Virus record (IMG/VR): IMGVR_UViG_3300042319_002138
Coordinates: 162,304-226,303 of that record
Length of the DNA stretch: 64,000 nt
Strand: one strand, 5' to 3'
Part shown: positions 9,674 to 50,376 of the stretch, piece by piece
Layout: every line of letters begins with the position of its first letter
Numbering within the stretch: the first letter of the stretch is position 1
Program-made: the position numbers and the translations under genes
The notes under the pieces: model-generated
Database searches by the model: none
Seen by the model: only the letters and a program-made list of their open reading frames with translations
What the model was told of the DNA's origin: nothing

Positions 9674-10132
9674 ATGAAAATTACAAAAACAAGTGAGAAA
9701 GGTATTGATTTAATTAAATCTTTTGAAGGATTTATGTCAAAACCTTATTTATGTCCAGCTAAAATCCCAACAATTGGGTATGGAGCAACTTTTTACCCTG
9801 ACGGTAAAAAAGTAACCTTAAATGACAAAGCGATTACTGAAGCGGAAGGTGTTGCGTTATTAAAAAGTATGTTAGTAAAGTTTGAACAATACGTTGATTC
9901 TTACTGTGTGGATACAATTAATCAAGGTCAATTTGATGCATTAGTTTCTTTCGCCTATAACTTAGGTCCAGCTAACTTAAAATCTAGTACATTACTTAAA
10001 AAAGTTAATACTGACCCTAACGACCCAACTATTGAAGTTGAATTCTTAAAATGGACTAAAGCTGGTGGTAAAACACTTAAAGGTTTGGTAAGAAGAAGAG
10101 AGGCTGAAGTTAAATTATATTTTAATAAATAA
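9674..10132 (+). CDS. Lysozyme (GH24-type endolysin)
   Basis: 'IKSFEG...YLCPAKIPTIGYG', 'QFDALVSFAYNLG', 'GLVRRREAE'. Confidence 0.92.
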   Translation: MKITKTSEKGIDLIKSFEGFMSKPYLCPAKIPTIGYGATFYPDGKKVTLNDKAITEAEGVALLKSMLVKFEQYVDSYCVDTINQGQFDALVSFAYNLGPANLKSSTLLKKVNTDPNDPTIEVEFLKWTKAGGKTLKGLVRRREAEVKLYFNK

Positions 10133-26604: not shown

Positions 26605-26678
26605 CGATGTGTATATCAGTTGGTTAGATAGACACTCTGATAAGGTGTAGGTCGGAGGTTCGAGCCCTCCCACATCGA
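26605..26678 (+). tRNA. tRNA-Ile(GAU)
   Basis: Cloverleaf; anticodon loop CTGATAA. Confidence 0.93.
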
Positions 26679-26718
26679 CAAAAAAGAAAAAGTTCTTTGA
26701 TGTATTGGTATTAGTAAT

Positions 26719-26791
26719 GACTCAGTAGCTCAATTGGTAGAGCTCCACACTGTTAATGTGGCCGTTACAGGTTCAAGTCCTGTCTGAGTCG
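26719..26791 (+). tRNA. tRNA-Asn(GUU)
   Basis: Cloverleaf; loop CTGTTAA. Confidence 0.93.
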
Positions 26792-26794
26792 CTG

Positions 26795-26915
26795 AGGTTG
26801 ATTGGGGAATGATATAACGTTAACGTGTCAGTAGTCGTGGTTATATCGGAGTTGTAACTGTCCGAGTAAAGCCAATCGTAAAAGGGGATGTCCACACAAC
26901 CATCTTCCCCTTTCC
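26795..26915 (+). ncRNA. Candidate structured RNA between tRNA-Asn and tRNA-Tyr
   Basis: GATTGG/CCAATC, GATATAAC/GTTATATC and GGGGATG/CATCTTCC stems. Confidence 0.5.
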
Positions 26916-26921
26916 TAACTT

Positions 26922-27002
26922 GGGAACTGAAAGTCGTTTGGATACGGCAGCGAAACTGTAAATTTCGTCCTCGCGGGAGTGGTTCGAGTCCACCAGGTCC
27001 CA
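26922..27002 (+). tRNA. tRNA-Tyr(GUA), atypical D arm
   Basis: Loop CTGTAAA, T arm GGTTCGAGTCC, acceptor GGGAACT/AGGTCCC. Confidence 0.75.
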
Positions 27003-27070
27003 CAAAAAAAAATAAATGTAATATAAGTGGATTTTAACTCTGTTTGTTATATTTATAATAAAAGAATATT

Positions 27071-27520
27071 ATGAAACAGAGAGAAGTTAAAATTACTGAT
27101 GAAGAAATAAAGTTGGCATATGACAAATACGACACACTACATCAGGCATCCGCAGAATTAAAAATGACTACTGTGTCATTATGGAGAAGGGCAAAAAAAA
27201 TTGGTTTAGCCTGGAAAGATAAAAACTTTAAACCTGAACAACAAAAAATACCTTTAAACGAGATTATAGAAGGTAAACATCCGTACTACCAAACCTTAAA
27301 ATTAAAAAAAAGGTTATTGAAAGAAGGGGTTAAAGAAAATAAGTGTGATATTTGCGGTATAATAGATTGGAATAATATAGAGTTATCAATGCAATTAGAC
27401 CATATTGATGGTGACTCACACAACCACAAATTGGATAATTTAAGGATGGTTTGCCCTAACTGCCATTCACAAACAAACACTTATTGTGGTAAAAATAAAA
27501 AAATCAAAGCGGAAATTTGA
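27071..27520 (+). CDS. HNH homing endonuclease inside tRNA cluster 1
   Basis: 'KCDICG...QLDHIDGDSHNHKLDNLRMVCPNCH'. Confidence 0.9.
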   Translation: MKQREVKITDEEIKLAYDKYDTLHQASAELKMTTVSLWRRAKKIGLAWKDKNFKPEQQKIPLNEIIEGKHPYYQTLKLKKRLLKEGVKENKCDICGIIDWNNIELSMQLDHIDGDSHNHKLDNLRMVCPNCHSQTNTYCGKNKKIKAEI

Positions 27521-27550
27521 AAACAACATGTCTTCCTGTATATTTTATAC

Positions 27551-27622
27551 GCGTCTTTGGTGTAATTGGTAGCACGGCTGGTTCCAACCCAGTCGGTCAG
27601 GGTTCGAGGCCTTGGGGATGTG
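27551..27622 (+). tRNA. tRNA-Trp(CCA)
   Basis: Loop TTCCAAC; G-U-rich acceptor. Confidence 0.8.
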
Positions 27623-27627
27623 CAAAT

Positions 27628-27703
27628 GGTGATGTAGCTCAGTTGGTAGAGCAAAGGACTGAAAATCCTTGTGTCGAAGGTTCAATTCCTTCCATCACCA
27701 CCA
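27628..27703 (+). tRNA. tRNA-Phe(GAA)
   Basis: Loop CTGAAAA; encoded CCA. Confidence 0.95.
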
Positions 27704-27707
27704 TTAT

Positions 27708-27782
27708 AGGGTAATGGACTAATTGGCAAGTCACCACGTTTGGGACGTGGGCATCGTGAGAGTTCGAGTCTCTCTTACCCTA
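27708..27782 (+). tRNA. tRNA-Pro(UGG)
   Basis: Loop TTTGGGA. Confidence 0.9.
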
Positions 27783-27790
27783 CTATACAA

Positions 27791-27863
27791 TGTCCTATGG
27801 TGTAATTGGCAACACGTCGGTTTTTGGTACCGAAGAGTCGAGGTTCGAACCCTTGTGGGACAA
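27791..27863 (+). tRNA. tRNA-Gln(UUG)
   Basis: Loop TTTTGGT. Confidence 0.9.
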
Positions 27864-27869
27864 CAATAT

Positions 27870-27943
27870 GGTGTTTGAAGCATTAAGGTGATGTACTAGT
27901 TTGTGGGACTAGGAAAGACGGGTCGGTACCGTCCTTACACCCA
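27870..27943 (+). tRNA. tRNA-His(GUG), non-canonical T loop
   Basis: Loop TTGTGGG; G-1 extended acceptor; T loop GTCGGTA. Confidence 0.75.
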
Positions 27944-27947
27944 AAAA

Positions 27948-28037
27948 GGAAAGGTGGGTGAGTGGCTAAAACCAACAATCTGCTAAGTTGTCGTACCTGT
28001 AAGGGTACCGAGGGTTCGAATCCCTCCCTTTCCTCCA
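27948..28037 (+). tRNA. tRNA-Ser(GCU)
   Basis: Loop CTGCTAA, long variable arm, CCA. Confidence 0.93.
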
Positions 28038-28040
28038 TAT

Positions 28041-28112
28041 GTGGATGTGATGTAACGGTTAACATGAGACTCTTATACAGTCTTCTCGGTGGTTCAACTC
28101 CACCCATCCATA
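28041..28112 (+). tRNA. tRNA-Ile(UAU)
   Basis: Anticodon arm AGACT-CTTATAC-AGTCT. Confidence 0.8.
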
Positions 28113-28117
28113 CTATT

Positions 28118-28191
28118 ACACTCTTAGCTCAATGGATTAGAGCACAACGTTACGGACGTTGGGGTTGGTGGTTCGAGTCCATCAGAGTGTA
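28118..28191 (+). tRNA. tRNA-Arg(ACG)
   Basis: Loop TTACGGA. Confidence 0.9.
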
Positions 28192-28200
28192 CAATAATAA

Positions 28201-28271
28201 GGCACCATGCCCGAGTGGTTAGGGGTCGGTCTGCAAAACCGCTTACATTGGTTCGAACCCAATTGGTGCCT
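28201..28271 (+). tRNA. tRNA-Cys(GCA)
   Basis: Loop CTGCAAA. Confidence 0.92.
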
Positions 28272-28354
28272 CTATCTTTAATTTCTTTTATATTCAATAT
28301 AGGCCCAAACACCAACAAATATTGGGGTTAGTATAGCAATAACTATTTCTGTAT

Positions 28355-30562
28355 TCATCGCATAATTGTTAAATGTCCTGTTATCATTTTACGTGAGTCA
28401 TCATACTCAGACCCATACATTATTCTCCAAACATAAATCCCATCAAAACACATTTTATTATTATAAGTACCATCCCAACCAACGGTATGATTGTATGATT
28501 CAAAAATTGTTTCACCCCATCTATTGAATACCAATAAATTATAATCATAGACATCAAACCCATCAGTAAATATTGGTAACCAAATATTGTTGAAAGCATC
28601 ACCATCGGGGGTAAATGTATTAGGTATATAAATTAATTCTTGTGGACATTCTTGTATTGCTATATTAGCTTGTTCTTCATTAGAAACACAACCATTAACC
28701 GTTTGGGAAACGCTAATTGTATAAAAACCAACATTATTCCAAACATAAGGTAAACTATTATCTTGTATTGTATCACCTTCAACAACCCAATCAAACAACC
28801 CAGATAAAGATGAATAAGCTGTATAGATTCTAAAAATACTATCACCTTCACAAAGTTGGTTAAATTCATATGAAGGTGTTACAGATGTTATGATTGGTTG
28901 TGGGTTTACAATAACGTTGATTGTTGTATCAAATGGGCAATTACTTTGTGTATATGTATAAGTTACATCATTGTTTGTTATGATACCTTGTTGTGGGCAA
29001 AATTCATCAGTCTGAACCCCATTGACTAAGAAAGTACCATTTAAAGGTGAACCCACTAAATCTACACAACCATCATAATCACAAAAAGGACCAATAGGGT
29101 CTATTGTAGGGTTTATGTTTAAAATAAATGTAGTGAAGTAAGAGGTATCACTATTACAACCAATAGGACTAGTAGAATAAACACTTATAGAGTCTTGATA
29201 TAAACCACTAGGTTCTAATGACCAATCCGTTGTTATATTATCAGTACCTTGACCATTTATTATTTGTGGTGTTGTAGACCATATGTAGTTGTAACCAACA
29301 CCCATAGAAGGTACACTATAACTTTCTGATGTTGATAAATAACATACCGTATCAGGACCACTAATAGGTGTCATTATTATTTGTGCTGGGTTAGTGAGTG
29401 TTGCATTACCTGTTACGGTACAACCTATACCGTCTGTAATTAAAAAACTATAATTACCATAACAAAGGTTAGTGGGGTTAAAAGTTGTTTGTAGAGTATT
29501 CCAAGAAATAGTAGTGACACCATTGGTTCCGTTAGGGATTACATTAATACTACCATCACAATAGTTATAACAAGTTGGGTCAATAAAAGTAATTGTAGGT
29601 TGTGGTAAGTTAGGTGGACCAGGTTGTACAAACACCGTATCAGGTCCTGGACCGGCAATACTATTACAAGTATTCCATCCAACATTACAAGAAGGATATA
29701 CTAGTTGACAAGTATAATTAGCTCCTTGTACAGGTGGTGTAACCGTAATGGACGCACCAACCCCAATTGGATTTGGGTTACCTACAATATACCATGTTGG
29801 TACAGGTAAAACAGTTGGTCCACTTGGAGTGTATCGGTACGCATCATTATTTGCTGTCCATTGTGTGGAATTCCTACCTGGTACAGTTATCGCCACGGTT
29901 CCTGTGGTATTATGTAATCCTTGAACCGCGGTACCTCCCGCCCAAGCTAGACAGTTTGGTTTTGATTGAATATAATTTTCTATTACGTTTGTTGATTCAT
30001 AAATCACTGTATGAAATGTCCCCAGTAAATTTGTACATGAAAACATAGGGACACCAACCCAACTAACAACTAATTTTCTACAAGGTGCTGTACCTTGAAC
30101 TTGGTACCTAATTTGCCCACCTAAACCTGGGTGCCAATCTTGCCAAGGACCCATGACACAATTTTTTGGTACTGTACCCGCACCATTAGGTATTGTTGCT
30201 GAAGTAAATGTTGTTGGTTGTGCCGGTGAAAAAGAAATCCAACCGTTAGAACCAACCCAAAATTGATTGTATGTTTGTCCAAAGAAACAAAATGTAAACC
30301 CAATATTAAAAGGACCTTGTTGTGAATCATCCGACATAAATAATTGTGTACCAGTATTTGTTTGTGTTACATAAGGAATATTTGTAACACCGTAGTTTGT
30401 TGTTTGATTTGGATTTGAACCTGGTCCACATTGACTAAAATCGGCAGTTAATGTTGTTGACCCAACACCACAAGGTAGTATTTGGTCTGGTCCTAAATAA
30501 GGACAGTATTGTGAATAGGTCACAAAAGAAATTAGTATAAAAAGGTATTTAATTAAGTTCAT
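28355..30562 (-). CDS. Secreted adhesin-like protein with T9SS type B (gliding motility-associated, CHU_C) C-terminal domain
   Basis: Signal peptide ending YSQ; C-terminal 'YIPNTFTPDGDAFN...VFNRWGE...GWDGTYN...GIYVW'. Confidence 0.88.
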   Translation of the reverse strand: MNLIKYLFILISFVTYSQYCPYLGPDQILPCGVGSTTLTADFSQCGPGSNPNQTTNYGVTNIPYVTQTNTGTQLFMSDDSQQGPFNIGFTFCFFGQTYNQFWVGSNGWISFSPAQPTTFTSATIPNGAGTVPKNCVMGPWQDWHPGLGGQIRYQVQGTAPCRKLVVSWVGVPMFSCTNLLGTFHTVIYESTNVIENYIQSKPNCLAWAGGTAVQGLHNTTGTVAITVPGRNSTQWTANNDAYRYTPSGPTVLPVPTWYIVGNPNPIGVGASITVTPPVQGANYTCQLVYPSCNVGWNTCNSIAGPGPDTVFVQPGPPNLPQPTITFIDPTCYNYCDGSINVIPNGTNGVTTISWNTLQTTFNPTNLCYGNYSFLITDGIGCTVTGNATLTNPAQIIMTPISGPDTVCYLSTSESYSVPSMGVGYNYIWSTTPQIINGQGTDNITTDWSLEPSGLYQDSISVYSTSPIGCNSDTSYFTTFILNINPTIDPIGPFCDYDGCVDLVGSPLNGTFLVNGVQTDEFCPQQGIITNNDVTYTYTQSNCPFDTTINVIVNPQPIITSVTPSYEFNQLCEGDSIFRIYTAYSSLSGLFDWVVEGDTIQDNSLPYVWNNVGFYTISVSQTVNGCVSNEEQANIAIQECPQELIYIPNTFTPDGDAFNNIWLPIFTDGFDVYDYNLLVFNRWGETIFESYNHTVGWDGTYNNKMCFDGIYVWRIMYGSEYDDSRKMITGHLTIMR

Positions 30563-30705
30563 TTTTTTTTTATTTATAAATATAATATTAAGACGTATTT
30601 AAATGTAAATAGAAGGAACACTTATCCCAAAAGGTGGGATTGGAGAATATCTAGTACTTTTGGCTTATTTTTTAAATTTACGATTAAATAGAATATTTAT
30701 ATTAT

Positions 30706-31455
30706 ATGAAGTTAATTAGAGAATTCGATGATTTTAGTTGGACTAATATGGGTACACTTAATCCGTTTATGAGTGATGACCCACTTGTTGTTGTATGGTT
30801 AGATAAATCTGCCACTGAATCAGAGATTAATAAATTATATGATATGCTTTTGGAAGTTAATATAGAAATTAGTACATCAAAGTCAGATTTTGTAAAAAGT
30901 TTATTAACATATTCTAGAAATGGGTCTGCATATGTTAAATCTTACATAGCTCAAAATGGTGAAAAAAGAGCTGGGTATGGTGATACAAAAGCTTTATTTG
31001 ATGAACATAAATATTGGAAAGCTATGGAAGATTTAGACGGTAAACCATATATAGAATATAAATTAGGTGATATCTTTAAAGATAGATTAAATGAGTCTGA
31101 AGAGTTAAATTGGATTATAGAAAGTAACCCATCATTTAGAAACAAGATAATTATTTTTGAACCACTGATTATTGAGGATGAGTATAATATTGTTATAGAT
31201 GGTTTATTAGAATTTGATGAGGACCTTTATACCTATAGTGGTAATTTAGAAGAATTAAGACCTTTCACTTCTTATGATTATTTACACCATTTAGTTATAG
31301 GTTTAAATGGTGTAGTAGCTTATGGTGGGGCCAATGAACATAACAACGAAGACTGGGGTGGTTTTATGGATAACGTAGAAAATTACATAGGTAATTATTA
31401 TAAAAATTTTAACAACCCAGAAGTTATTGATGGAAGAAAATATTTTAATCTTTAA
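30706..31455 (+). CDS. Acidic two-module protein (MKLIREFDDFSW; internal RLNESEELNWI)
   Basis: ATATTTATA upstream; shared motif family. Confidence 0.6.
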   Translation: MKLIREFDDFSWTNMGTLNPFMSDDPLVVVWLDKSATESEINKLYDMLLEVNIEISTSKSDFVKSLLTYSRNGSAYVKSYIAQNGEKRAGYGDTKALFDEHKYWKAMEDLDGKPYIEYKLGDIFKDRLNESEELNWIIESNPSFRNKIIIFEPLIIEDEYNIVIDGLLEFDEDLYTYSGNLEELRPFTSYDYLHHLVIGLNGVVAYGGANEHNNEDWGGFMDNVENYIGNYYKNFNNPEVIDGRKYFNL

Positions 31456-31479
31456 TAACTCCAATTAATACTTATTGAT

Positions 31480-33405
31480 ATGGATAAAAATTTTTACATT
31501 AATAAATTAAATAAAACTTTAATTTCACAAACACATAACCCTCTTTTTTATAAAGGGGATATAGTAGAAGGTTCTAAAATTCTAACTAAAGAAGTTGTAG
31601 ACTCAATTAATGTTGATAGATGTTCTATATGGTTATACAACAAAAATAAAACATCTATTGTTTGCCAACAATTATATGTTAAATCTGAAAATATGTGGTA
31701 TGATGGTTTAGAAATCTTTGAAAAGGATTTTGGACCGTATTTCGAAGAATTAATAAAGAACCCAATAATAATAGCTAATGATGCTGAAAAACATCCAGCA
31801 ACATCTTGTTTTACTGATGGTTATTTAAAACCACTGGGTATTAAATCTATGTTAGATGTACCTATCATTTATTTTGGGGAAACTATTGGTGTTATATGTA
31901 TTGAAAGTTTTACATTACGTGAATGGGATTCTTTTGAGGTTGATTTTACTCAATTATTATCTTCTTTATACACTTTTGCTTATTCAATAAAAGAAACAAA
32001 CAATTTAAATAAAAAAATAGAAGAAACAGAAAAATTTATTGACGTATCGACAATTATATCTACTGCTGATAAAAGAGGTAAAATTACATATGTTAATAAA
32101 AAATTTGAGGATGTTTCTGGGTGGTCTTTGGATGAGGTAGTTGGTAAAGACCATGTTATTGTTAATTCGGGATTACAACCTGATGGATATTGGGGTAAAA
32201 TGTATGAAACGGTAATGAAAGGTGATGTATGGAATGACGTTGTTACCAATAAAGGAAAATCAGGAGAATTATATTACGTTGATACTTTTATTAGAGCAAT
32301 TTTTGATACCGATGGTAAATTGGATGGATTTGCTTCAATAAGACAAGATGTTACAGAACTTAAAAAAAAGGAAGTTGAAATTCGCAATAGAATGAACGCG
32401 ATAAATAAATCTAACGCAGTTATTGAGTTTGATTTAGAAGGAAACATCATTTTTGCTAATAATTTGTTTTTAGAAACTATGGGATATTCTTTACAGGATG
32501 AAGTAGTTGGAAAACACCATAGAATTTTTATAGATGAGGAATACTCAAAAAGTGAAGAATACTCTCTTTTTTGGGAAAAATTAAATGAAGGGGTGTTATT
32601 TACCGGTGAAATTACTAGAATTAAAAAAGACGGTTCTTTAGTGTATCTACAAGCAACATACAATCCAGTTATCGGTTTAGATGGTAAGGTTTATCGTGTT
32701 ATGAAAATCGCGACAGATATCACCAATTCCTACGAACAAAAGAAAGAAATTGAAAAGAAAAACACTTACCTAGAACATGCGGCTAAAATATTAAGACACG
32801 ATATGCATTCAGGTATTAATACTTATATGCCAAGAGGATTAAGTTCTTTAGAAAGAAGATTAACCCCCGAAGATATTAAAACTTTAAAAATTGAGGCCCC
32901 AATTAAAATGATTAAAGAGGGTTTAAAACATTCCCAAAAAGTATATAAAGGGGTTTACGAATTTACAAATCTTGTAAAGAAAGATGTTGTTTTAAATAAA
33001 ACGGAATGTAATTTAAAAGATATACTTGAGGATTATTTATCAGCGACAGCATATAGTAGTCAAGTTATTATTGATGAGTTACCAACGATAGAAGTTAATG
33101 AACCATTATTCTGTACCGCAGTCGATAATTTAATTCGTAATGGGTTAAAGTATAATGATAGTAATACAAAATTTGTTAAAATATATATGGAAGATGGTAA
33201 TCTAATTATACAAGACAACGGTAGAGGGATTACACAAAAAGATTTTATTCATTTATCCCAACCATATACCAGAAAAGAAGGCCAAAAAGAATCTGGAACT
33301 GGTCTAGGGCTTAATATATGTGTAGCTATTTTAGAAGAACATAAATTTAATATTTCGTGTGAGAAAAATGACATAGGGACAAAAATGAAAATTGAACTAA
33401 AATGA
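31480..33405 (+). CDS. Cytoplasmic sensor histidine kinase (GAF-PAS-PAS-HisKA-HATPase)
   Basis: GAF 'MLDVPII..GVICIE'; two PAS/PAC; H box 'RHDMHSG'; N box 'DNLIRNGLKY'; 'DNGRG'; 'GTGLGL'. Confidence 0.93.
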   Translation: MDKNFYINKLNKTLISQTHNPLFYKGDIVEGSKILTKEVVDSINVDRCSIWLYNKNKTSIVCQQLYVKSENMWYDGLEIFEKDFGPYFEELIKNPIIIANDAEKHPATSCFTDGYLKPLGIKSMLDVPIIYFGETIGVICIESFTLREWDSFEVDFTQLLSSLYTFAYSIKETNNLNKKIEETEKFIDVSTIISTADKRGKITYVNKKFEDVSGWSLDEVVGKDHVIVNSGLQPDGYWGKMYETVMKGDVWNDVVTNKGKSGELYYVDTFIRAIFDTDGKLDGFASIRQDVTELKKKEVEIRNRMNAINKSNAVIEFDLEGNIIFANNLFLETMGYSLQDEVVGKHHRIFIDEEYSKSEEYSLFWEKLNEGVLFTGEITRIKKDGSLVYLQATYNPVIGLDGKVYRVMKIATDITNSYEQKKEIEKKNTYLEHAAKILRHDMHSGINTYMPRGLSSLERRLTPEDIKTLKIEAPIKMIKEGLKHSQKVYKGVYEFTNLVKKDVVLNKTECNLKDILEDYLSATAYSSQVIIDELPTIEVNEPLFCTAVDNLIRNGLKYNDSNTKFVKIYMEDGNLIIQDNGRGITQKDFIHLSQPYTRKEGQKESGTGLGLNICVAILEEHKFNISCEKNDIGTKMKIELK

Positions 33406-34016
33406 TAAAACTAAAAAATTTATTAACCATATTTTTCATAAGTATGGTAAGTATAGTGTATTCACAACCAACCTACCCTATCCAGACACAATTAAAAGGT
33501 GATTCTGTGGTTATTCTTACAAAAAAACAATCTGATGATATTAATTCACTAATTGAGAATCAAAAAATTAGAATACAAAAATATAAAACAGAAATAAAAT
33601 TAGTTAATGATACTAACACGTTATTAAATAACGATATTAAAATAAAAGATAGTGTTATTAACCAATTGGATAGTTTGTTAACCGTCCAAAACAATTATTA
33701 CGATAGTTTAATTTCTAAAATAGATACGTTAGAGAATTGGATTTTATCGTCGTCGATAGATAATGGGTACCTATATTATTCTTGGCAAGACTCAACAGTT
33801 AAAGTTATTGATTTAAGTTTGTATATGTTAGTATCGCATAGAGGAAGTGGTAATTATAGTTTAATTACAAGAGGTGATGTTACTAATATATATTATTGGA
33901 AACAAATAAATCTACTTAAAGAAGAAAGTCCTGAGATTGGTTGGGAATTAAATATATCCCCAAAATATAAACCAAGAATAGTATTATTCCCATATAAATT
34001 AACCCCAAAATTATGA
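33402..34016 (+). CDS. Secreted coiled-coil protein in two-component locus
   Basis: Signal peptide ending YSQ. Confidence 0.6.
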   Translation: MIKLKNLLTIFFISMVSIVYSQPTYPIQTQLKGDSVVILTKKQSDDINSLIENQKIRIQKYKTEIKLVNDTNTLLNNDIKIKDSVINQLDSLLTVQNNYYDSLISKIDTLENWILSSSIDNGYLYYSWQDSTVKVIDLSLYMLVSHRGSGNYSLITRGDVTNIYYWKQINLLKEESPEIGWELNISPKYKPRIVLFPYKLTPKL

Positions 34017-35416
34017 TAAAAAATATTTTAATAACAATAATGTTTTTGGGTTTTTTTACTTCTTTAAATGTAAATTCACAGACTGATAATAACCCCAAAA
34101 AAACAGAGATTGAACCTACATGTCCTAGTGATAGTCGTATAACTAGTTTAATTAAAAAATTAAATTACGAACCAAATAAAAAATTAACTAAATACCAATC
34201 AAGCTTATGTCAAGAAATTGGTATCTCTTTTTATAATAAAGGTATGTATGATGAGTCAGATTGGTATTTAGATAAGGTTAGTACCTATATTGATGTTGTT
34301 GATTTAAAACCTGAAAAAGTTTTTGACACACCTAAAGAAGAACCCGTACAAGAGTTAAGTGACTCAGAATTATCTAGTATTAAAGCCGACCAAAAATTTT
34401 TAGATGACCTACCAAAATCATACGATAATTTATCTAAAAAAGATATAAAAAAAATTGCTGATGAGATAGAGTCAAAACTCCAAAAACTATTAAAAGAAAA
34501 AAAAGAATTATTAAAAAATAAAGCTAGTCAAGAAGTTATCAGTTCTAAAACAAGTACTATACAAATATTAGGTAAAGAAAAAAATATCATTAATCTTAGT
34601 GTTAAAAATGATGATTTAGTTACCGATAAAAAAACCTTAAAAAAATATTTATGGTGGTCCACAATTGTTCTTTCTGTTTTGGTTTTAGGTATTATTGTTT
34701 TATTACAAAGAAAAACAATTAAAGTCCAAGACATAGAAATCGAAAACCAATTAAAAGACATTAACAAGAAAAACACTTACCTTGAATATGCGGCTAGAAT
34801 AATTAGACACGACATGCATTCAGGTATTAACACCTATATACCAAGAGGGTTATCGTCATTAGAAAAAAGAATTTCAATTGAGGAAATGAATAACTTAAAA
34901 ATTACACCCTCAATTAAAATGATAAAAGATGGTTTGGCACACACACAAAAAGTATATAAAAGTGTTTATGAGTTTACAAACCTTGTGAAAAATACTGTAG
35001 TTTTAGATAGAAATATGGTTGATATAAAAGAATCTTTATTAAAATACTTAACAAATACATCATATAAAAATCAGGTAGAAATTAGTGAATTAGTTACACT
35101 AAATGTAAATGAAACTCTTTTTTGGAACGCTATTGATAATTTAATTAAAAATGGGTTAAAATATAATAGTAGTGAAAATAAAGAAATTAAAATTTACATG
35201 GATAATAATGATTTAATTATTGAAGATAATGGTGTTGGATTTTCACAAAAAGAGTTCGAAAGAACAACAGGTGAATATTTAAATAAAAAGAGTAATTCCG
35301 AAGTTGGTTTAGGTTTAGGTATAACCAAAACAATTTTAGAAGAACATGGTTTTAGTATGATGTGTGAAAAAATTAACACTGGTACAAAAATAACGGTTAA
35401 ATTAAATAAAAATTAA
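34013..35416 (+). CDS. Membrane sensor histidine kinase
   Basis: Signal peptide, periplasmic domain, one TM, H box 'RHDMHSG', 'DNLIKNGLKY', 'DNGVG', 'GLGLG'. Confidence 0.9.
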   Translation: MIKNILITIMFLGFFTSLNVNSQTDNNPKKTEIEPTCPSDSRITSLIKKLNYEPNKKLTKYQSSLCQEIGISFYNKGMYDESDWYLDKVSTYIDVVDLKPEKVFDTPKEEPVQELSDSELSSIKADQKFLDDLPKSYDNLSKKDIKKIADEIESKLQKLLKEKKELLKNKASQEVISSKTSTIQILGKEKNIINLSVKNDDLVTDKKTLKKYLWWSTIVLSVLVLGIIVLLQRKTIKVQDIEIENQLKDINKKNTYLEYAARIIRHDMHSGINTYIPRGLSSLEKRISIEEMNNLKITPSIKMIKDGLAHTQKVYKSVYEFTNLVKNTVVLDRNMVDIKESLLKYLTNTSYKNQVEISELVTLNVNETLFWNAIDNLIKNGLKYNSSENKEIKIYMDNNDLIIEDNGVGFSQKEFERTTGEYLNKKSNSEVGLGLGITKTILEEHGFSMMCEKINTGTKITVKLNKN

Positions 35417-35423
35417 AAAAAAA

Positions 35424-35861
35424 ATGATTGATTCTATATTATTAGTTGATGACGAGGATTTATTCCATTTAGTATTTGAGGATGCGTGTTCCTTATTAGA
35501 TATAAGTTTGTCTTTAAACGCGTTAAACAGTTCTGACGAAGCAGCAAAACTATTCCAAAAATGGTTCCAAAGTGGTAATGAAGACAATAAACCAGAATGT
35601 GTTTTTGTTGACTTAAATATTATTGGTAGTTCTTTTGATGGTATTGAGTTAATTAGAAAAATAAACTTTGAATATGGTAACCATGTGGTTATTGGTATAA
35701 TTTCATCGTCTAATGAACCAGATGAACAAGCTAAAGCATTACAAGCTGGAGCACAGTTTTGGATTATTAAATCAGACGATATAGAACCAAGACTAGAAGA
35801 ATTTAGAAAAGATTACGAAGGTTATAAAAATAGAACCGCACCATTTAAAGTTTACAAATGA
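35424..35861 (+). CDS. Stand-alone response regulator (receiver domain)
   Basis: 'ILLVDD', phosphoacceptor 'FVDLN', 'ISSS', 'WIIKS'. Confidence 0.92.
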   Translation: MIDSILLVDDEDLFHLVFEDACSLLDISLSLNALNSSDEAAKLFQKWFQSGNEDNKPECVFVDLNIIGSSFDGIELIRKINFEYGNHVVIGIISSSNEPDEQAKALQAGAQFWIIKSDDIEPRLEEFRKDYEGYKNRTAPFKVYK

Positions 35862-36535
35862 TTAAAATAGAAAGTTTTACTAAAAAAAGTTTAATAGATT
35901 TATATAAAGAAAAAAATGTAGGTCTTGAGGGTAATATCACAAAATTAATTGATTCTGAGGATGATGAAGAATTTAAAGATTATTTAAAAGATTGTGAATT
36001 AAGAGATACCGAAAAAAGGAAGAAGCGTCTTGATATGACAAAAAAAATACAAAAACAAAATCAAGAACTATCTAATTTAAATAATGAAAACGAAAGAATT
36101 CTAGAAGAATTACAGGAAACTTTAAAAGACGTTGAGGATTCCAAGTTGACGTATGAGGTTCAGAATAAGGAACTTAATGAGTGGAAAGAAGATAACCTTA
36201 GATTAACTGAAGAGTTAAAAAATGAAATGGCTAAATCTGAAAAGGCTAGAATAGATGCGGAAAAAGCTAAAGATATGGCCGAAAACGATTTAGATTTATT
36301 ACAAAAAAGAACTCAAAATGAACTAATCTCCACCATTGTTAGAGTTGCTCTATGGATAATCATGGGTGTGGGTTTTGTAACAACTGGTGTTTATGTCTTC
36401 ACATTATTAATGGGCAAAGACACTCAAGTTATTAGTGCTACTTGGTCTAACATATTTGGTATTCTATTAACAAATGCATTTTCTATTGTAGGTACCATTA
36501 TGGGTATAAAATACGCAACAGAAAAAAAAGAATAA
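35858..36535 (+). CDS. Coiled-coil protein with two C-terminal TM helices
   Basis: Long E/K heptads, then two hydrophobic segments. Confidence 0.65.
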   Translation: MIKIESFTKKSLIDLYKEKNVGLEGNITKLIDSEDDEEFKDYLKDCELRDTEKRKKRLDMTKKIQKQNQELSNLNNENERILEELQETLKDVEDSKLTYEVQNKELNEWKEDNLRLTEELKNEMAKSEKARIDAEKAKDMAENDLDLLQKRTQNELISTIVRVALWIIMGVGFVTTGVYVFTLLMGKDTQVISATWSNIFGILLTNAFSIVGTIMGIKYATEKKE

Positions 36536-36541
36536 AAATAG

Positions 36542-36572
36542 TTTGACAATTAATAAACTTTTACTATATTTG
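36542..36572 (+). promoter_or_regulatory. Bacteroidota-type promoter for leader 2 / tRNA cluster 2
   Basis: TTTGACA and TATATTTG; flanking sequence closely resembles the leader-1 promoter. Confidence 0.75.
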
Positions 36573-36614
36573 TACCATATTTAATTAATACGAACAAAAA
36601 TTTTTATAAATTCA

Positions 36615-36716
36615 ATGAAAACAACAATGACATACAAACAAGGGACCGTTAAAACGGTTGATGGGAAAGTGGATTCACTTTTCTACGGACATGGGTTGTC
36701 ATACTGGAGTTGTTGA
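36615..36716 (+). CDS. Leader peptide 2 (33 aa, MKTTMTYKQGTVKTVDGKVDSLFYGHGLSYWSC)
   Basis: Short ORF between promoter and terminator; codons mirror tRNA cluster 2. Confidence 0.8.
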   Translation: MKTTMTYKQGTVKTVDGKVDSLFYGHGLSYWSC

Positions 36717-36741
36717 TTTGAATTTACTCTATATATAGAAT

Positions 36742-36773
36742 AACCCTGGGTCCAAAAGATTCAGGGTTTTTTG
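36742..36773 (+). terminator. Attenuator terminator of tRNA cluster 2
   Basis: AACCCTGGGTC-caaaa-GATTCAGGGTT plus T-tract. Confidence 0.8.
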
Positions 36774-36799
36774 TTCTTTGATATATCGGTTTAAAAAAA

Positions 36800-36889
36800 G
36801 GAAGGGTGGCAGAGTTGGTCTATTGCATCTGATTTGAAATCAGAAGTACCTTTGAAAGGGTACCGTGGGTTCGAATCCTACCTCTTCCT
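36800..36889 (+). tRNA. tRNA-Ser(UGA)
   Basis: Loop TTTGAAA, long variable arm. Confidence 0.93.
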
Positions 36890-36896
36890 CATAAAT

Positions 36897-36968
36897 GGTC
36901 CATTGGTGTAGTGGCCAACATACATCCCTGTCACGGATGTGCCGCGAGTTCGATTCTCGCATGGACCG
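36897..36968 (+). tRNA. tRNA-Asp(GUC)
   Basis: Loop CTGTCAC. Confidence 0.92.
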
Positions 36969-37009
36969 CAACTAACCATAAATCCTAGTAACCCCTAGGT
37001 TGGTTAAAC

Positions 37010-37082
37010 AGTTCCTTAGCTCAGCTGGGAGAGCAACTCGCTTACATCGAGAAGGTCACAGGTTCGAACCCTGTAGGAACTA
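37010..37082 (+). tRNA. tRNA-Val(UAC)
   Basis: Loop CTTACAT. Confidence 0.92.
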
Positions 37083-37091
37083 CAATAAATT

Positions 37092-37166
37092 GCCTCATTA
37101 GCTCAGCTGGCTTAGAGCGTCTGATTTGTACTCAGAAGGCCGTGGGTTCGATTCCTACATGAGGCT
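37092..37166 (+). tRNA. tRNA-Thr(UGU)
   Basis: Loop TTTGTAC. Confidence 0.92.
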
Positions 37167-37228
37167 CAATTAATAACAAACAAATAAAAACGTCAGATTA
37201 TGGAAAGTGGCAAGTATGGCAAACACAA

Positions 37229-37300
37229 TCCCTCGTAGCAAACAAGTGTAGGCAACGGACTTTTAATCCGTGGGGCTGGGAGCGTTACCCGGCGGGGGAA
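37229..37300 (+). tRNA. tRNA-Lys(UUU), non-canonical T loop
   Basis: ACGGA-CTTTTAA-TCCGT; T arm CTGGG-AGCGTTA-CCCGG; 7-bp acceptor. Confidence 0.75.
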
Positions 37301-37308
37301 CAAAACAC

Positions 37309-37378
37309 ACCGAGGCTTAGTGGTAAAGAACTATCTCTCATAAGGATGGTCAAGTGGGTTCAATTCCCATACTCGGTA
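37309..37378 (+). tRNA. tRNA with CAU anticodon (Met or Ile2), short D arm
   Basis: Loop CTCATAA; T arm GTGGG-TTCAATT-CCCAT. Confidence 0.7.
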
Positions 37379-37386
37379 CATTATAT

Positions 37387-37457
37387 TGCGGCAAGGTGTA
37401 ATTGGTTGCATGGGAGTCTCATAAACTTCAGGGGTGGTTCGAGTCCACAGCACGCTA
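37387..37457 (+). tRNA. tRNA with CAU anticodon, imperfect acceptor stem
   Basis: GGAGT-CTCATAA-ACTTC; bulged acceptor. Confidence 0.6.
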
Positions 37458-37462
37458 CTAAT

Positions 37463-37537
37463 GGGGATATAGTTTAATTGGCTAAAACATCTGATTTGCA
37501 TTCAGAAGATGTCTCGGTTCGATTCCGAGTATCTCCA
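37463..37537 (+). tRNA. tRNA-Ala(UGC)
   Basis: Loop TTTGCAT; G3-U70. Confidence 0.92.
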
Positions 37538-37570
37538 CAATAAAATAACAAAAGAAAAAGAAAGAAATTA

Positions 37571-37690
37571 ATGAAGATAGTGTTAACAGGTAAATTAGAA
37601 TCACATAGAGAAATTTTTAGAGGAGAAAGAGAAAAAAATAAATTGATTAAAAGAATAAAAAAATTTATTTTTAAAAGAAAAAACGCTTAA
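37571..37690 (+). CDS. Small basic ORF inside tRNA cluster 2 (39 aa)
   Basis: ATG 37571 to TAA 37690; not in the ORF track. Confidence 0.35.
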   Translation: MKIVLTGKLESHREIFRGEREKNKLIKRIKKFIFKRKNA

Positions 37691-37734
37691 TAGAACAAAG
37701 TACAAGTTCAGGGTGGGGTGCGGTTCCCACAAAT

Positions 37735-37811
37735 GCGGGTGTAGCTCAATTGACTAGAGTACTAGCCTTCCAAGCTGGGAGTTGCGGGTTTGAATCCCGC
37801 CACCCGCTCCA
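37735..37811 (+). tRNA. tRNA-Gly(UCC)
   Basis: Loop CTTCCAA; CCA. Confidence 0.92.
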
Positions 37812-37812
37812 T

Positions 37813-37895
37813 ACGTCAGTGGCGGAATTGGTAGACGCGTTGGTTTTAGGAACCAATATCGTTAAGATGTGGGGGTTCGACTCCCCCCTGACGTA
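37813..37895 (+). tRNA. tRNA-Leu(UAG)
   Basis: Loop TTTAGGA, long variable arm. Confidence 0.93.
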
Positions 37896-37938
37896 CTTTT
37901 ATTTTGCCAATTAAACAATAACCCTTATATTTGTAATT

Positions 37939-38634
37939 ATGAAAAAATTAACCTTTATTAGTGACACACACACCAAACACGAGAAACTTAACGGTTTTCT
38001 TCCTGGTGGTGATATGTTAATCTGTGCTGGTGATATCACTAGTAGAGGTTATAAAACTGAAATTGAAAATTTTCTTAAGTGGTTTGATAAAATTGATAAC
38101 TATGACCACAAAATTTTCATAGCAGGTAATCACGACTTTGGTTTCCAAGACCAACCTAATGAAACTAAAGGTTTGTTAACTGGTTATAAAACAGTTGAAT
38201 ATTTACAAGACGAACTTTTATTGGTTGGTGATGAGGATTATGACGATATGGTTAAAGTTTGGGGTACTCCTTGGCAACCTGAATTTCATAATTGGGCATT
38301 TAACTTACCAAGAGGACAAGCTTTAAAAGAGAAGTGGGATATGATAACAGTTGGTACTGACATTCTTATCACTCACGGACCACCATTTGGCAAATTGGAT
38401 TACGTAAAATACCCAAATCAAAATGTTGGTTGTGAAGAACTAATGAAACGAGTTGAAGTAATCAAACCAAAAATTCACGTATTTGGACACATCCACGAAG
38501 GTTATGGTTATGTGTTTGATGGAAATACTCACTACATTAACGCAGCTGTGTTAAATGGACGATATGAGTTCCGCAATAAACCTGTGAATGTTTTATGGGA
38601 TAAAAACACAAATCATTTGGAATTTGTTGATTAA
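37939..38634 (+). CDS. Calcineurin-like metallophosphoesterase
   Basis: 'SDTH', 'AGD', 'AGNHD', 'THGPP', 'FGHIH'. Confidence 0.92.
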   Translation: MKKLTFISDTHTKHEKLNGFLPGGDMLICAGDITSRGYKTEIENFLKWFDKIDNYDHKIFIAGNHDFGFQDQPNETKGLLTGYKTVEYLQDELLLVGDEDYDDMVKVWGTPWQPEFHNWAFNLPRGQALKEKWDMITVGTDILITHGPPFGKLDYVKYPNQNVGCEELMKRVEVIKPKIHVFGHIHEGYGYVFDGNTHYINAAVLNGRYEFRNKPVNVLWDKNTNHLEFVD

Positions 38635-38651
38635 TAGGTTATCTTTGTGGT

Positions 38652-39113
38652 ATGAATAAAGTAAAAATATATTTGGATGACATAAGAACTCCTAATGACA
38701 AAGATTGGTTGGTTGTTAGGAGTTTTTATGAATTTGTAGACTTAATAAATAAAGTTGGTTTGAATAACATCGAATTAATTTCATTAGACCATGACTTGGG
38801 TGATACTGCTATGAATGAGTATTATAACAATGTTTCACCTAACTACAAATTAGATTATGAGAACATAGAAGAAAAAACTGGTTACGACGCGGTTAAATGG
38901 TTAGTTAATTTGTTTTATTCTTTGAATGAACATAGAATCAACATGAGTAGGTCTGAGAAAAAAAGGGATAAAAATTTTTATTTCCCTAAAGTTGTGGTTC
39001 ATTCAGCTAACCCAATAGGTTCAGCTAATATCATGGGTTATATCAATAACTTTTTAATGAATGAAGGTAAATCACAAGATTGTATAAGAGTTAAAATTGA
39101 GTATTATGTATGA
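38652..39113 (+). CDS. Cyclic-phosphate processing receiver-like domain protein
   Basis: 'IYLDDIRTP', 'ISLDHDLG', 'TGYD', 'VHSANPIG'. Confidence 0.8.
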   Translation: MNKVKIYLDDIRTPNDKDWLVVRSFYEFVDLINKVGLNNIELISLDHDLGDTAMNEYYNNVSPNYKLDYENIEEKTGYDAVKWLVNLFYSLNEHRINMSRSEKKRDKNFYFPKVVVHSANPIGSANIMGYINNFLMNEGKSQDCIRVKIEYYV

Positions 39114-43917: not shown

Positions 43918-44000
43918 GCTCGGGTGGTGAAATAGGTATACACGTTTGACTTAAAATCAAATTCCCATTGGGAGTGAGGGTTCAAGTCCCTCTCCGAGTA
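43918..44000 (+). tRNA. tRNA-Leu(UAA)
   Basis: TTTGA-CTTAAAA-TCAAA, long variable arm. Confidence 0.92.
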
Positions 44001-44061
44001 CTGTGAAATGAACAACGTCACCACAAGAGTTGTACCTTTATGGTTTTATAATGTGGTATTT

Positions 44062-44133
44062 GGTCCTATCGACTATCGGTTAGGTCGTCAGGTTTTCATC
44101 CTGGAAAGCGGGGTTCGATTCCCCGTAGGACTA
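44062..44133 (+). tRNA. tRNA-Glu(UUC)
   Basis: Loop TTTTCAT. Confidence 0.92.
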
Positions 44134-44216
44134 CAAAAGAGGTGGATACTTTGTACGTAGATAATTTAGTAATATCTTGTCGTAGTGCACCGTTGACGAA
44201 ACCTCTTTTATTTTTG

Positions 44217-44289
44217 GGTCCCGTAGTGTAATGGATTAACATAAGGAGCTTCTACCTCTTTGATTCAGGTTCGAATCCTGACGGGACTA
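44217..44289 (+). tRNA. tRNA-Arg(UCU)
   Basis: Loop CTTCTAC. Confidence 0.9.
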
Positions 44290-44356
44290 CTAAAAAAATA
44301 TTAACTACTAGGTTCGATTTTTAATAAACCTTAAATATTTATTAATAAAATATATT

Positions 44357-45640: not shown

Positions 45641-45714
45641 GGTCCTTTAGCTCAGTCGGTTAGAGCAACAGACTCATAATCTGTGGGTCCACGGTTCGAG
45701 CCCGTGAAGGACCA
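45641..45714 (+). tRNA. tRNA(CAU), probably Ile2 (lysidine type)
   Basis: ACAGA-CTCATAA-TCTGT; body resembles bacterial Ile2. Confidence 0.8.
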
Positions 45715-45797
45715 CAATCCCTTTGTATTGACAAGGGGATTTTTATTTTGATATTTAAAAATAATTCCTTATCTTTGTAGAAATAAAATAAGGGACT

Positions 45798-50297: not shown

Positions 50298-50370
50298 TGT
50301 GGGATGGAGAAGTTGGTATCTCAGCAGGCTCATAACCTGAAGGCCGCTGGTTCGAGTCCAGCTCCCGCTA
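50298..50370 (+). tRNA. tRNA-Met(CAU), initiator-like
   Basis: Loop CTCATAA; mismatched 1:72 pair. Confidence 0.85.
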
Positions 50371-50376
50371 CTAATA

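Follow-up and report, generated by a model that had tools for sequence, protein, structure and literature searches.

We analysed a 64,000-nt stretch of DNA (the window), positions 162,304 to 226,303 of the 226-kb virus record IMGVR_UViG_3300042319_002138, and focused on five tightly packed genes on the + strand at 31480-36535. These encode K1 (31480-33405), a GAF-PAS-PAS histidine kinase; O2 (33402-34016), a secreted coiled-coil protein; K2 (34013-35416), a membrane kinase; RR (35424-35861), a stand-alone receiver; and O5 (35858-36535), a protein with a small N-domain, a long helix and a C-terminal TM hairpin. The observation on which this work was based, namely that a two-component island with paired kinases and no DNA-binding output lies at this position, was confirmed. 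Three of the gene junctions are 4-bp overlaps and one is a 7-nt gap, and the only strong promoter-like and terminator-like sites lie downstream of O5; co-transcription is therefore plausible but inferred. The downstream boundary (36543-36768, + strand) consists of a promoter-like TTGACA-16-TATATT (36543-36570), a 33-aa ORF and a terminator-like hairpin (36742-36768) before tRNA cluster 2, although these are consensus matches only and the sigma-70 consensus may not apply to Bacteroidota. tRNA clusters at 26605-28272 and 36800-37896 flank the region, with a T9SS-CTD gene on the - strand and a 249-aa ORF between cluster 1 and K1.

Domains and motifs of the five proteins

K1 (641 aa) has no TM segment and comprises GAF (about residues 33-165), PAS (about 190-300) and PAS (about 310-420) domains, followed by DHp and HATPase_c (420-641). 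Pfam detected GAF, two PAS and HATPase_c (PF02518, 1.7e-13) in K1, HATPase_c in K2 and Response_reg in RR, but nothing in O2 or O5. The H-box RHDMHSGINTY is present in both kinases, at R439-Y449 of K1 (32794-32826, +) and R265-Y275 of K2 (34805-34837, +), with H440 and H266 as the predicted phospho-accepting histidines. This motif is invariant in 65 unique K1 and 12 unique K2 orthologues, apart from single M-to-L and T-to-I variants in two K1 sequences, and the RHD motif is invariant in all 77 unique kinases. The CA domain and DHp helix 2 align to HK853, QseC and CpxA. However, the Pfam HisKA model did not detect the DHp, and H440 was assigned by positional alignment; its correspondence to SHELRTPLT of HK853, anchored on the aligned second DHp helix, is inferred. 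The N, G1 and G2 boxes of K1 (NLIRNGLKY, DNGRG and G[TS]GLGL) are conserved in 64-65 of 65 orthologues, and the sensor region is modular in relatives.

K2 (467 aa) has a signal/TM-like N-terminus, a hypervariable periplasmic region of about 190 aa and a TM segment at 213-231, followed by DHp and HATPase_c. The two kinases are 57% identical over 221 aa of DHp+CA, 75% over the 75-aa DHp and 81% around the H-box helix, so that their original description as having near-identical DHp domains is a slight overstatement. Although K2 keeps the N and G1 boxes, the first Gly of the G2 box is lost and the ATP-lid segment is variable. The ATP-binding boxes are therefore only partly retained in K2, which may not be an equal kinase.

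RR (145 aa) has no output domain, and PF00072 matched it with 35.9 bits, above the cut-off. D9/D10, the predicted phospho-acceptor D63 (35610-35612), S94-S96 and K116 are invariant in 36 diverse orthologues, with a mean column identity of 88%. The nearest solved structure is 3ilh, a two-component response regulator. RR is the only PF00072 match in the 226-kb record, which holds only two HATPase_c genes. We also examined whether RR belongs to the cREC (cyclic-phosphate-processing receiver) systems, in which a divergent receiver, PF20274, is linked to RNA-repair or NAD enzymes and never to histidine kinases. RR does not match PF20274, and the cREC protein is a separate neighbouring gene at 38652-39113.

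O2 (204 aa) has a signal-peptide-like, hydrophobic N-terminal helix, a conserved YPIQT..KGDSVVILT motif, a long helix and a poorly predicted beta-rich C-terminus, and had no hit in Pfam, NCBIfam or PADLOC. The AF2 model of O5 (225 aa; mean pLDDT 85.8) shows a small N-terminal cap, one helix spanning residues 37-185 and a second helix at 189-222, which gives a C-terminal TM hairpin. We refer to the N-terminal cap and conserved segment (about residues 1-70) as O5N; it is followed by a coiled-coil stalk of variable length and by the hairpin (about residues 156-222; 36323-36523, +) with a short charged tail. TM2 (WSNIFGILLTNAFSIVGTIMGIKYA) is the most conserved stretch, with invariant columns from W196 to Y219, and contains a GxxxG motif. 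O5 belongs to a virus-only family without a Pfam model, and its nearest 100 Atlas clusters are all viral.

A conserved three-gene core and its bacterial cousins

A chimeric host fragment had been named in advance as one outcome that would overturn the observation. We found instead that the GC content of the island (0.26-0.30) matches its surroundings, that five contigs from different samples, assembled independently, carry 100%-identical copies of the kinase core, and that seven retrieved loci show the same gene order from the T9SS-CTD gene to cREC. Moreover, hundreds of related viral contigs, up to 322 kb, carry the module. It is absent from GenBank phages but very common in this uncultured clade of giant lake phages: the receiver search alone gave at least 571 confirmed matching stretches in IMG/VR, and the O5 family has 5,963 protein clusters.

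Conservation of the five-gene order in other phages had likewise been proposed as a check, and the comparison showed that the conserved unit is smaller. K1-RR-O5 occurs in 51 of 61 non-redundant contigs, whereas K2 occurs in 10; O2-K2 is thus an accessory insert found in about 16% of non-redundant relatives, and O2 is present in 9 and missing in 3 of 12 distinct K2-bearing variants. K2 cores form one clade (99/97 support) nested in the K1 radiation, indicating that the K2 core arose once by duplication of that of K1. The RR stop and O5 start overlap by 4 or 1 nt in 59 of 61 contigs, and the kinase-RR-O5 trio stays together on contigs with GC from 0.39 to 0.66 that share nothing else with this phage.

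We then scanned 185,579 species genomes with the H-box pattern and found it at only eight loci, all in MAGs. In bacterial-type loci (L163, L177/L178 and L179-L181), a kinase with the same H-box (59% identical core) and a receiver 66-70% identical to RR are followed by a protein in which the first ~100 residues of O5 (38-44% identity) are fused to HisKA + HATPase_c, and the start of this gene overlaps the receiver stop. O5N therefore behaves as an input module placed after this receiver. However, one cellular locus (L165) has the kinase and RR without any O5N gene found in that genome with our query. Conversely, three phage proteins retain the stalk and hairpin without O5N: P0140 is a K1-type GAF fused to O5 residues 60-225, and P0167 and P0174 are PAS domains fused to O5 residues 98-225. 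These are stand-alone genes with no kinase or receiver nearby, and P0140 and P0167 were each found in two samples. The stalk and hairpin thus behave as the output.

Proximity to endolysin genes in relatives

In 50 of 64 distinct O5 variants, a GH19 endolysin homologue lies near the cassette. In 24 it starts 10-23 nt after O5 on the same strand, and in 13 it is divergent, 26-149 nt upstream of K1. The neighbour in locus L022 was confirmed as PG_binding_1 + Glyco_hydro_19 with no N-terminal hydrophobic segment, the five-gene relative L117 has the same O5-endolysin junction, and the fusion genes sit among small TM and lipoprotein ORFs upstream of GH19 endolysins. However, 14 of 64 variants lack the linkage, including the lineage of the window: no GH19 or PG_binding_1 gene was found in the 226-kb record, and the best endolysin candidate, a T4-type lysozyme (PF00959; 9674-10132, +), lies about 21 kb from the cassette and is only a possible downstream partner. 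Whether O5 is encoded in a lysis cluster was thus answered differently by the relatives and by the window's own genome, and we do not regard it as settled. The linkage counts come from related genomes and are partly inherited synteny; two different arrangements plus the fusion loci argue against pure inheritance, but the number of independent events is small.

With two C-terminal TM helices, a cytoplasmic N-terminus and a short charged C-tail (KYATEKKE), O5 resembles the topology of class II holins. However, at 225 aa, with a cytoplasmic extension of about 155 aa, it is larger than typical holins, so that its architecture neither places it among them nor excludes it. O5 matched no Pfam, PHROG or NCBIfam holin family, and a Foldseek search against viral structures found only one uncharacterised homologue, although this is weak evidence because holin families are very diverse. 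Other small TM proteins recur 0.9-2.3 kb downstream of O5 and could be the true holin, in which case O5 might be only a regulator or have another membrane role. None of these small ORFs matches an annotated holin or spanin family, so that the term lysis cassette rests on the endolysin plus topology. Contigs of three-gene relatives occur in lake metatranscriptome libraries, which is only suggestive of expression.

A proposed signalling route to lysis timing

The original interpretation was supported: this is a phage-borne two-component module with two kinases, one receiver and no DNA-binding output, and the guess that the coiled-coil/2-TM protein is the output is now backed by comparative evidence; O5 is very probably the output. 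Convergence of both kinases on RR is consistent with the invariance of the H-box and most of DHp helix 1 across K1 and K2, with the single receiver in the record and with the origin of the K2 core as a duplicate. Besides the three-gene core, the accessory and possibly unequal status of K2 and the distribution of the system, the original prediction did not include the link to the lysis cluster or the bacterial cousin cascade.

We propose, with only even confidence, that the island is a phage-encoded phosphorelay with a protein-level rather than a transcriptional output. In this model, K1 senses a cytoplasmic cue through its GAF and PAS domains, autophosphorylates on H440 and transfers the phosphoryl group to D63 of RR. 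In this lineage K2, a duplicate of the K1 core joined to a fast-evolving periplasmic domain and usually accompanied by O2, would feed a periplasmic cue into the same receiver, acting as a kinase or mainly as a phosphatase. RR, depending on its phosphorylation state, would act on O5N, and the signal would pass down the stalk to the hairpin, a holin-like or antiholin-like element that sets the time at which a signal-less endolysin reaches the cell wall, so that lysis timing depends on the state of the infected cell. Our analysis establishes the gene content, the intact motifs, the K1-RR-O5 core, the single duplication origin of K2, the domain swaps around O5 and the endolysin linkage in relatives, whereas phosphotransfer, binding of RR to O5N, membrane permeabilisation, the link to lysis timing and the nature of the signals are inferences. 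No biochemical data exist, neither autophosphorylation and His-to-Asp transfer nor the formation or blocking of lethal membrane lesions was assayed, and a prediction of the RR-O5 complex gave no answer (score 0.14). More tentatively still, a large clade of uncultured jumbo phages may time host lysis with its own phosphorelay, in which a stand-alone receiver, phosphorylated by cytoplasmic and in some lineages periplasmic sensor kinases, directly gates a new kind of holin or antiholin through O5N, a previously undescribed receiver-responsive domain that would serve in bacteria as the input of a second kinase in an unrecognised three-protein kinase cascade.

Other explanations were considered less likely. 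O5 might have a membrane role unrelated to lysis timing, such as superinfection exclusion, control of membrane potential or transport, or anchoring of a replication or assembly compartment, with the endolysin proximity being inherited synteny in a late-gene region. The lack of homology to known holins, the 14 unlinked variants, the separate small TM holin candidates and the outward-looking K2 and O2, which would suit sensing of incoming phages, favour this view. However, the linkage persists through two arrangements and in the independently derived fusion genes while other flanking genes are shuffled, and in L022-type genomes O5 is the membrane protein immediately upstream of an endolysin lacking a signal peptide; we regard this alternative as unlikely, though possible. 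Slightly less likely is a hijack of host signalling, in which the phage proteins cross-talk with a homologous host cascade (kinase, RR, then O5N-kinase, then an AraC-type regulator) and O5 is a membrane-tethered decoy that sequesters the host or phage receiver, or mimics the host O5N-kinase, to rewire host gene expression without a direct role in lysis. Closely related cellular-type systems do exist, with RR 61-70% identical and the same H-box, some of them in MAGs of Bacteroidetes, the likely host phylum, and O5 keeps the N-domain but lacks the kinase, as a dominant-negative decoy would. However, a decoy would not need a highly conserved TM hairpin, the sensor-hairpin fusions drop O5N altogether, the recurrent placement next to the endolysin would not be explained, and the cousin system was found in only a handful of the scanned genomes, so that most hosts may lack it.

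Recently captured host genes or an assembly chimera without phage function are very improbable. Although two-component genes are typically cellular and relatives were binned into MAGs of several phyla, this reading is already contradicted by the identical copies with the same flanks in five samples, the many viral contigs, the matching GC content, the all-viral nearest Atlas clusters of O5 and strong purifying conservation (RR at 82-94% identity, with invariant catalytic motifs). The MAG contigs sit in discordant phyla, and the flanks of the one annotated here (L164) have almost no Pfam matches, which fits mis-binned phage DNA.

No earlier description of the system was found, and the closest known systems differ from it. 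Classic HisKA-type systems with a single-domain (CheY-like) response regulator likewise combine DHp + HATPase_c kinases and a complete receiver pocket with output through protein-protein contact rather than DNA binding, although the contact of RR with its target is inferred; here the system is phage-encoded, the H-box variant escapes Pfam HisKA, and the presumed target is a new domain on a tail-anchored membrane protein. Single-domain receivers can also regulate a kinase through a non-catalytic domain, as DivK acts on DivL/CckA in Caulobacter. In the bacterial cousin loci the receiver is followed by a kinase whose only input is O5N plus a coiled coil, suggesting that the receiver controls a second kinase, which in the phage is replaced by a TM hairpin; no homology to DivL or CckA was found or tested. 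In Firmicutes, LytSR/CidR control of the holin-like CidAB and LrgAB proteins places holin-like or antiholin-like membrane proteins, and thereby cell lysis, under a two-component system; PMC3507848 came up in our literature search in this connection. LytSR is cellular and acts on transcription through a LytS-type sensor (5TM-5TMR_LYT + His_kinase) and a LytTR DNA-binding regulator, whereas Pfam and NCBIfam showed only GAF, PAS and HATPase_c and a receiver-only RR here, with no LytTR domain, the kinase is HisKA-like, control is presumably post-translational, and there is no sequence relationship; this is an analogy only. In T4 lysis inhibition, a lytic phage delays lysis in response to signals sensed in the periplasm and cytoplasm, and the periplasmic antiholin RI and the cytoplasmic antiholin RIII act on the soluble domains of holin T by direct binding without a phosphorelay; O2/K2 and K1 would be the corresponding periplasmic and cytoplasmic inputs, but family scans detected no homology and this is an analogy only. 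Arbitrium and VP882 VqmA quorum sensing also give a phage its own sensor to time a life-cycle step, but are one-component transcription factors that control lysis-lysogeny switching, and no integrase was found in the record studied here.

Lysis timing largely determines phage fitness, and the known ways of tuning it, holin allele clocks and T4-style lysis inhibition, do not use a signal-transduction pathway. A phage-owned kinase, receiver and membrane-effector relay would mean that the energy, redox or envelope state of an infected cell is read by the virus and turned into a decision about when to burst, which, given the abundance of the module, would bear on burst size, lake microbial turnover and phage ecology. 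It would also define a new receiver-responsive domain with interchangeable outputs (a TM hairpin or a kinase), a compact, portable switch for synthetic biology; the natural one-component fusions of GAF or PAS sensors to the hairpin offer simple constructs for testing the idea. It also exposes an undescribed bacterial cascade of kinase, receiver and second kinase.

Gene content and integrity of the island

The window is the last 64 kb of a 226,303-bp IMG/VR viral record that CheckV estimates to be about 70% complete. It has about 30% GC and carries 24 tRNA genes in several clusters plus a tmRNA (26605-28272, 36800-37896, 43918-44290, 45641-45715, 50298-50371 and 57996-58388; tmRNA tag ANATVGHFVTEGATVAA). 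The observation behind the original prediction, a five-gene signalling island at 31480-36535, was confirmed: five + strand ORFs were found there, namely K1 (31480-33405, 641 aa), O2 (33402-34016, 204 aa), K2 (34013-35416, 467 aa), RR (35424-35861, 145 aa) and O5 (35858-36535, 225 aa). Three of the junctions are 4-bp overlaps and one is a 7-nt gap. A 249-aa ORF (30706-31455) that ends 24 nt upstream of K1 has no family match; it is conserved only in the window-type loci and may be co-transcribed with the island. A strong promoter-like site and a terminator-like hairpin appear only after O5, where a near-consensus TTGACA-16-TATATT, a 33-aa ORF and the hairpin occupy 36543-36768, between O5 and the second tRNA cluster; their function is unknown and no Rfam match was obtained. 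Rfam found only tRNAs in 30400-38000, including a marginal extra tRNA-like match at 37309-37378 (30.3 bits) that ARAGORN did not call.

Pfam assigned GAF, two PAS and HATPase_c domains to K1, HATPase_c to K2 and Response_reg to RR, but nothing to O2 or O5. K1 has no TM segment, whereas K2 has a signal-like N-terminus and a TM segment at residues 213-231, O2 has a signal-like N-terminus, and O5 has two C-terminal TM helices. The whole record contains only these two HATPase_c genes and one classic receiver. A metallophosphoesterase gene followed by a cREC_REC (PF20274) gene (37939-39113, with cREC_REC at 38652-39113) lies directly after the second tRNA cluster; the latter belongs to a different class of receiver-like enzymes that is not part of histidine-kinase signalling, and the two are probably an RNA-end-processing or repair pair. 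In about 50 relatives, the phosphoesterase sits directly upstream of K1.

We next assessed whether the parts are intact. The two kinases are 57% identical over DHp+CA, 75% over the DHp and 81% around the H-box helix. Although Pfam HisKA did not detect the DHp, the CA domain and the second DHp helix could be aligned to HK853, QseC and CpxA. This alignment places RHDMHSGIN opposite SHELRTPLT, so H440 in K1 and H266 in K2 are the predicted phospho-acceptors, an assignment that is inferred. The H-box was essentially invariant across 65 unique K1 and 12 unique K2 orthologues. The N, G1 and G2 boxes of K1 are conserved, whereas K2 keeps N and G1 but has lost the first G2 glycine, and its lid segment is variable. 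RR keeps D9/D10, D63, S94-96 and K116 in all 36 diverse sequences aligned, with a mean column identity of 88%. The nearest solved structure to RR is 3ilh, a two-component response regulator from Cytophaga hutchinsonii.

Other identities suggested by weak similarities were rejected. Cofactor analysis of the PAS domains had been proposed at the outset, and on sequence a LOV-type photoreceptor reading of PAS1 is rejected because the flavin-cysteine motif is absent (GKDHVIVNSG in place of GRNCRFLQ), despite weak NifL and YtvA hits far below their cut-offs. A weak hit to PorY, the T9SS kinase, is rejected as generic CA-domain similarity (43 bits against a cut-off of 350). PADLOC gave no hits for the five proteins or the upstream ORF. 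The ESM Atlas returned only viral clusters with no Pfam family for O5 and nothing reliable for O2 (best score 0.73). The predicted O2 structure had a mean pLDDT of 64.9 with a poor C-terminal half, and no fold search was run on it because matches to a low-confidence model are meaningless.

Distribution and conserved core of the cassette

That the island might be a chimeric host fragment had been named beforehand as grounds for discarding the original prediction, and we compared independent copies. Five contigs from different samples carry 100%-identical copies of the kinase core, and seven fetched loci show the same gene order from the T9SS-CTD gene to cREC. The GC content of the island equals that of the phage background. 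The kinase-core search returned 132 confirmed matching stretches in viral contigs and the receiver search at least 571, on contigs up to 322 kb, and the O5 family comprises 5,963 protein clusters at 90% identity. The island is thus neither a chimera nor rare.

By contrast, nucleotide and protein searches of 50,697 GenBank phage records found no relative of the island, the kinase core or RR-O5, and no cultured model is available. No tyrosine integrase was found. Outside the window (for example, at G000:C1:94209-113559 and 128037-138950 of the same genome), a PHROG scan of the nine largest ORFs (642-1725 aa) gave almost nothing, only weak tape-measure and endolysin-like hits; an 845-aa protein carries a tail-lysozyme domain (PF18013). 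This is an uncultured and very novel jumbo lineage, very poorly represented among known phages. Next to the island, on the - strand (28355-30562), lies a gene for a 735-aa protein with a PKD-like domain and a CHU_C type IX secretion C-terminal signal, homologues of which (31-41% identity) lie near the cassette in relatives. It looks like a phage-encoded T9SS cargo protein and, together with cousin loci in Bacteroidetes, points to a Bacteroidota host, although this is inferred. A paper on 'moraphages', large aquatic Bacteroidota phages, does not mention kinases or receivers, and whether this phage belongs to that lineage was not established.

Conservation of the five-gene order in other phages had likewise been set in advance as a check. 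Gene-order mapping across 159 loci, and then across 61 non-redundant contigs, gave K1-RR-O5 in 51 contigs and K2-containing forms in 10, indicating that the conserved unit is three genes. O2 accompanies K2 in 9 of 12 distinct variants, and in the other three the K1 stop overlaps the K2 start. No RNA run holds this exact DNA; lake metatranscriptome libraries hold contigs of the three-gene form, which skip about 2.1-2.3 kb between K1 and RR relative to this window, showing that relatives are present but not proving transcription. In a maximum-likelihood tree of 80 kinase cores, all K2 cores fell in one clade (99/97 support), which is nested within the K1 radiation when the tree is rooted on the divergent MAG and cellular group. 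So K2 arose once, by duplication of the K1 core, and acquired a periplasmic domain that is now hypervariable. The K1 and K2 topologies disagree for some genomes, which suggests that the insert is exchanged among relatives. The K1 sensor region is itself modular (GAF+PAS+PAS, GAF+PAS, GAF only or PAS only), whereas RR is far more conserved (82-94% identity) than K1, O5, O2 or K2.

O5 as the proposed output and its link to endolysins

Several lines of evidence connect O5 to the receiver. The RR stop and the O5 start overlap in 59 of 61 contigs. To determine whether the genes persist as a unit, we scanned 185,579 species genomes for the H-box pattern, which was found at only eight loci, all in MAGs of discordant phyla with GC from 0.39 to 0.66. 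Five of the eight show kinase-RR-O5, two of them only in part, and within the 6-kb flanks they share essentially nothing else with this phage. Of the remaining three, one contig ends inside RR, one (locus L163) carries a bacterial cascade described below, and one (locus L165) is clearly cellular. L165 is a 967-kb contig with sulfur-transport, SoxA-type cytochrome, TetR and ABC1 genes; it has the kinase and RR but no O5, and no gene for the O5 N-domain (O5N) was found in that genome with our query.

An exhaustive profile search of 1.84 billion representative proteins found only 266 O5 relatives. Among them are five proteins of 318-349 aa in which the first ~100 residues of O5 are fused to HisKA + HATPase_c. 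In four of the five contexts seen, this O5N-kinase directly follows a kinase with the same H-box (59% identical core) and a receiver 66-70% identical to the phage RR; the receiver stop overlaps the O5N-kinase start, and the neighbouring genes are cellular (YceI, AraC-type HTH_18 and AP endonuclease). This bacterial three-protein cascade, comprising a kinase with the RHDMHSGIN H-box, a 143-aa receiver and O5N fused to HisKA-HATPase_c, is seen at L163 5251-8164, L179 179-3855 and L177 164-1608, and in loci L179-L181 it is followed by an AraC-type regulator. It is a likely ancestor or cousin of the phage cassette.

The same search also identified P0140, a K1-type GAF fused to O5 residues 60-225, and P0167 and P0174, K1-type PAS domains fused to O5 residues 98-225. 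P0140 and P0167 are real stand-alone genes, each seen in two samples, without any kinase or receiver nearby. These natural one-component versions in other phages (L171 5843-6925 and L172 4911-6026), in which GAF or PAS-PAS is fused directly to the stalk and TM hairpin of O5, sit among small TM and lipoprotein ORFs just upstream of GH19 endolysins. Together, the domain swaps mark O5N as the receiver-side input and the stalk plus TM hairpin as the effector. Direct RR-O5 binding remains inferred, because a prediction of the RR-O5 complex, run without controls, gave no answer (score 0.14) and was not used as evidence in either direction. The AF2 model of O5 (pLDDT 85.8) shows a small cap, one uninterrupted helix from residue 37 into TM1, a tight turn and TM2, which is the most conserved segment of the protein.

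Using the endolysins near the fusion genes as probes, we found a homologue within about 2 kb of 108 O5-bearing loci. On distinct O5 variants, the figure is 50 of 64: in 24 the endolysin starts 10-23 nt after O5 on the same strand, and in 13 it is divergent, 26-149 nt upstream of K1. The neighbour in L022, one of these relatives, at L022 9809-10636, is PG_binding_1 + Glyco_hydro_19 with no N-terminal hydrophobic segment, and the divergent five-gene relative L117 has the same junction, whereas other flanking genes are shuffled between relatives. The topology of O5 (N-in, two TM helices and a short charged tail) resembles that of class II holins with a long cytoplasmic extension. However, O5 matches no known holin family, and a Foldseek search of its model against viral structures found one uncharacterised homologue only. 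Other small TM proteins recur nearby and may be the true holin, although ten small ORFs near the endolysins had no annotated holin or spanin match in PHROG. In addition, the window's own genome has no GH19 or PG_binding_1 gene; its endolysin candidates, an Amidase_2 gene (3420-4004) and a T4-type lysozyme (9674-10132), lie 21-28 kb away. Homologues of a 108-aa TM protein encoded in the same region (8858-9184) lie a few kb downstream of O5 in 30 relatives. The lysis region appears to have been separated from the cassette in this lineage.

Comparison with other systems and proposed mechanism

The interpretation in the original prediction, a phage-borne two-component module, is supported: the parts fulfil the sequence criteria of a HisKA-type two-component system with a CheY-like receiver. 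The system is not LytSR/LrgAB, not T4 RI/RIII-T and not a cREC system, which are analogies or neighbours only. Full-text literature searches and the papers examined turned up no description of phage-encoded kinase-receiver control of a membrane or lysis protein, nor did we find a description of the bacterial cousin cascade. Two-component relays are already known; what differs here is a new receiver-responsive domain, a new type of output and a new biological setting.

Alternative explanations were weighed against a role in lysis. We consider it unlikely that the cassette hijacks, or acts as a decoy of, a homologous host cascade, and also unlikely, though slightly less so, that it serves another signal-controlled membrane function such as superinfection exclusion. 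A passenger gene set or a chimera is contradicted by the evidence and is very improbable. The model that we favour, which we hold to be about as likely as not, is that K1, and in this lineage also K2 with O2, set the phosphorylation state of RR. The relaxed ATP lid of K2, combined with its fully conserved DHp, suggests by inference that K2 may be biased towards phosphatase activity. In this model, RR acts on O5N, and the stalk transmits the signal to a hairpin that works as a holin or antiholin. Lysis timing would then depend on cytoplasmic and periplasmic cues.
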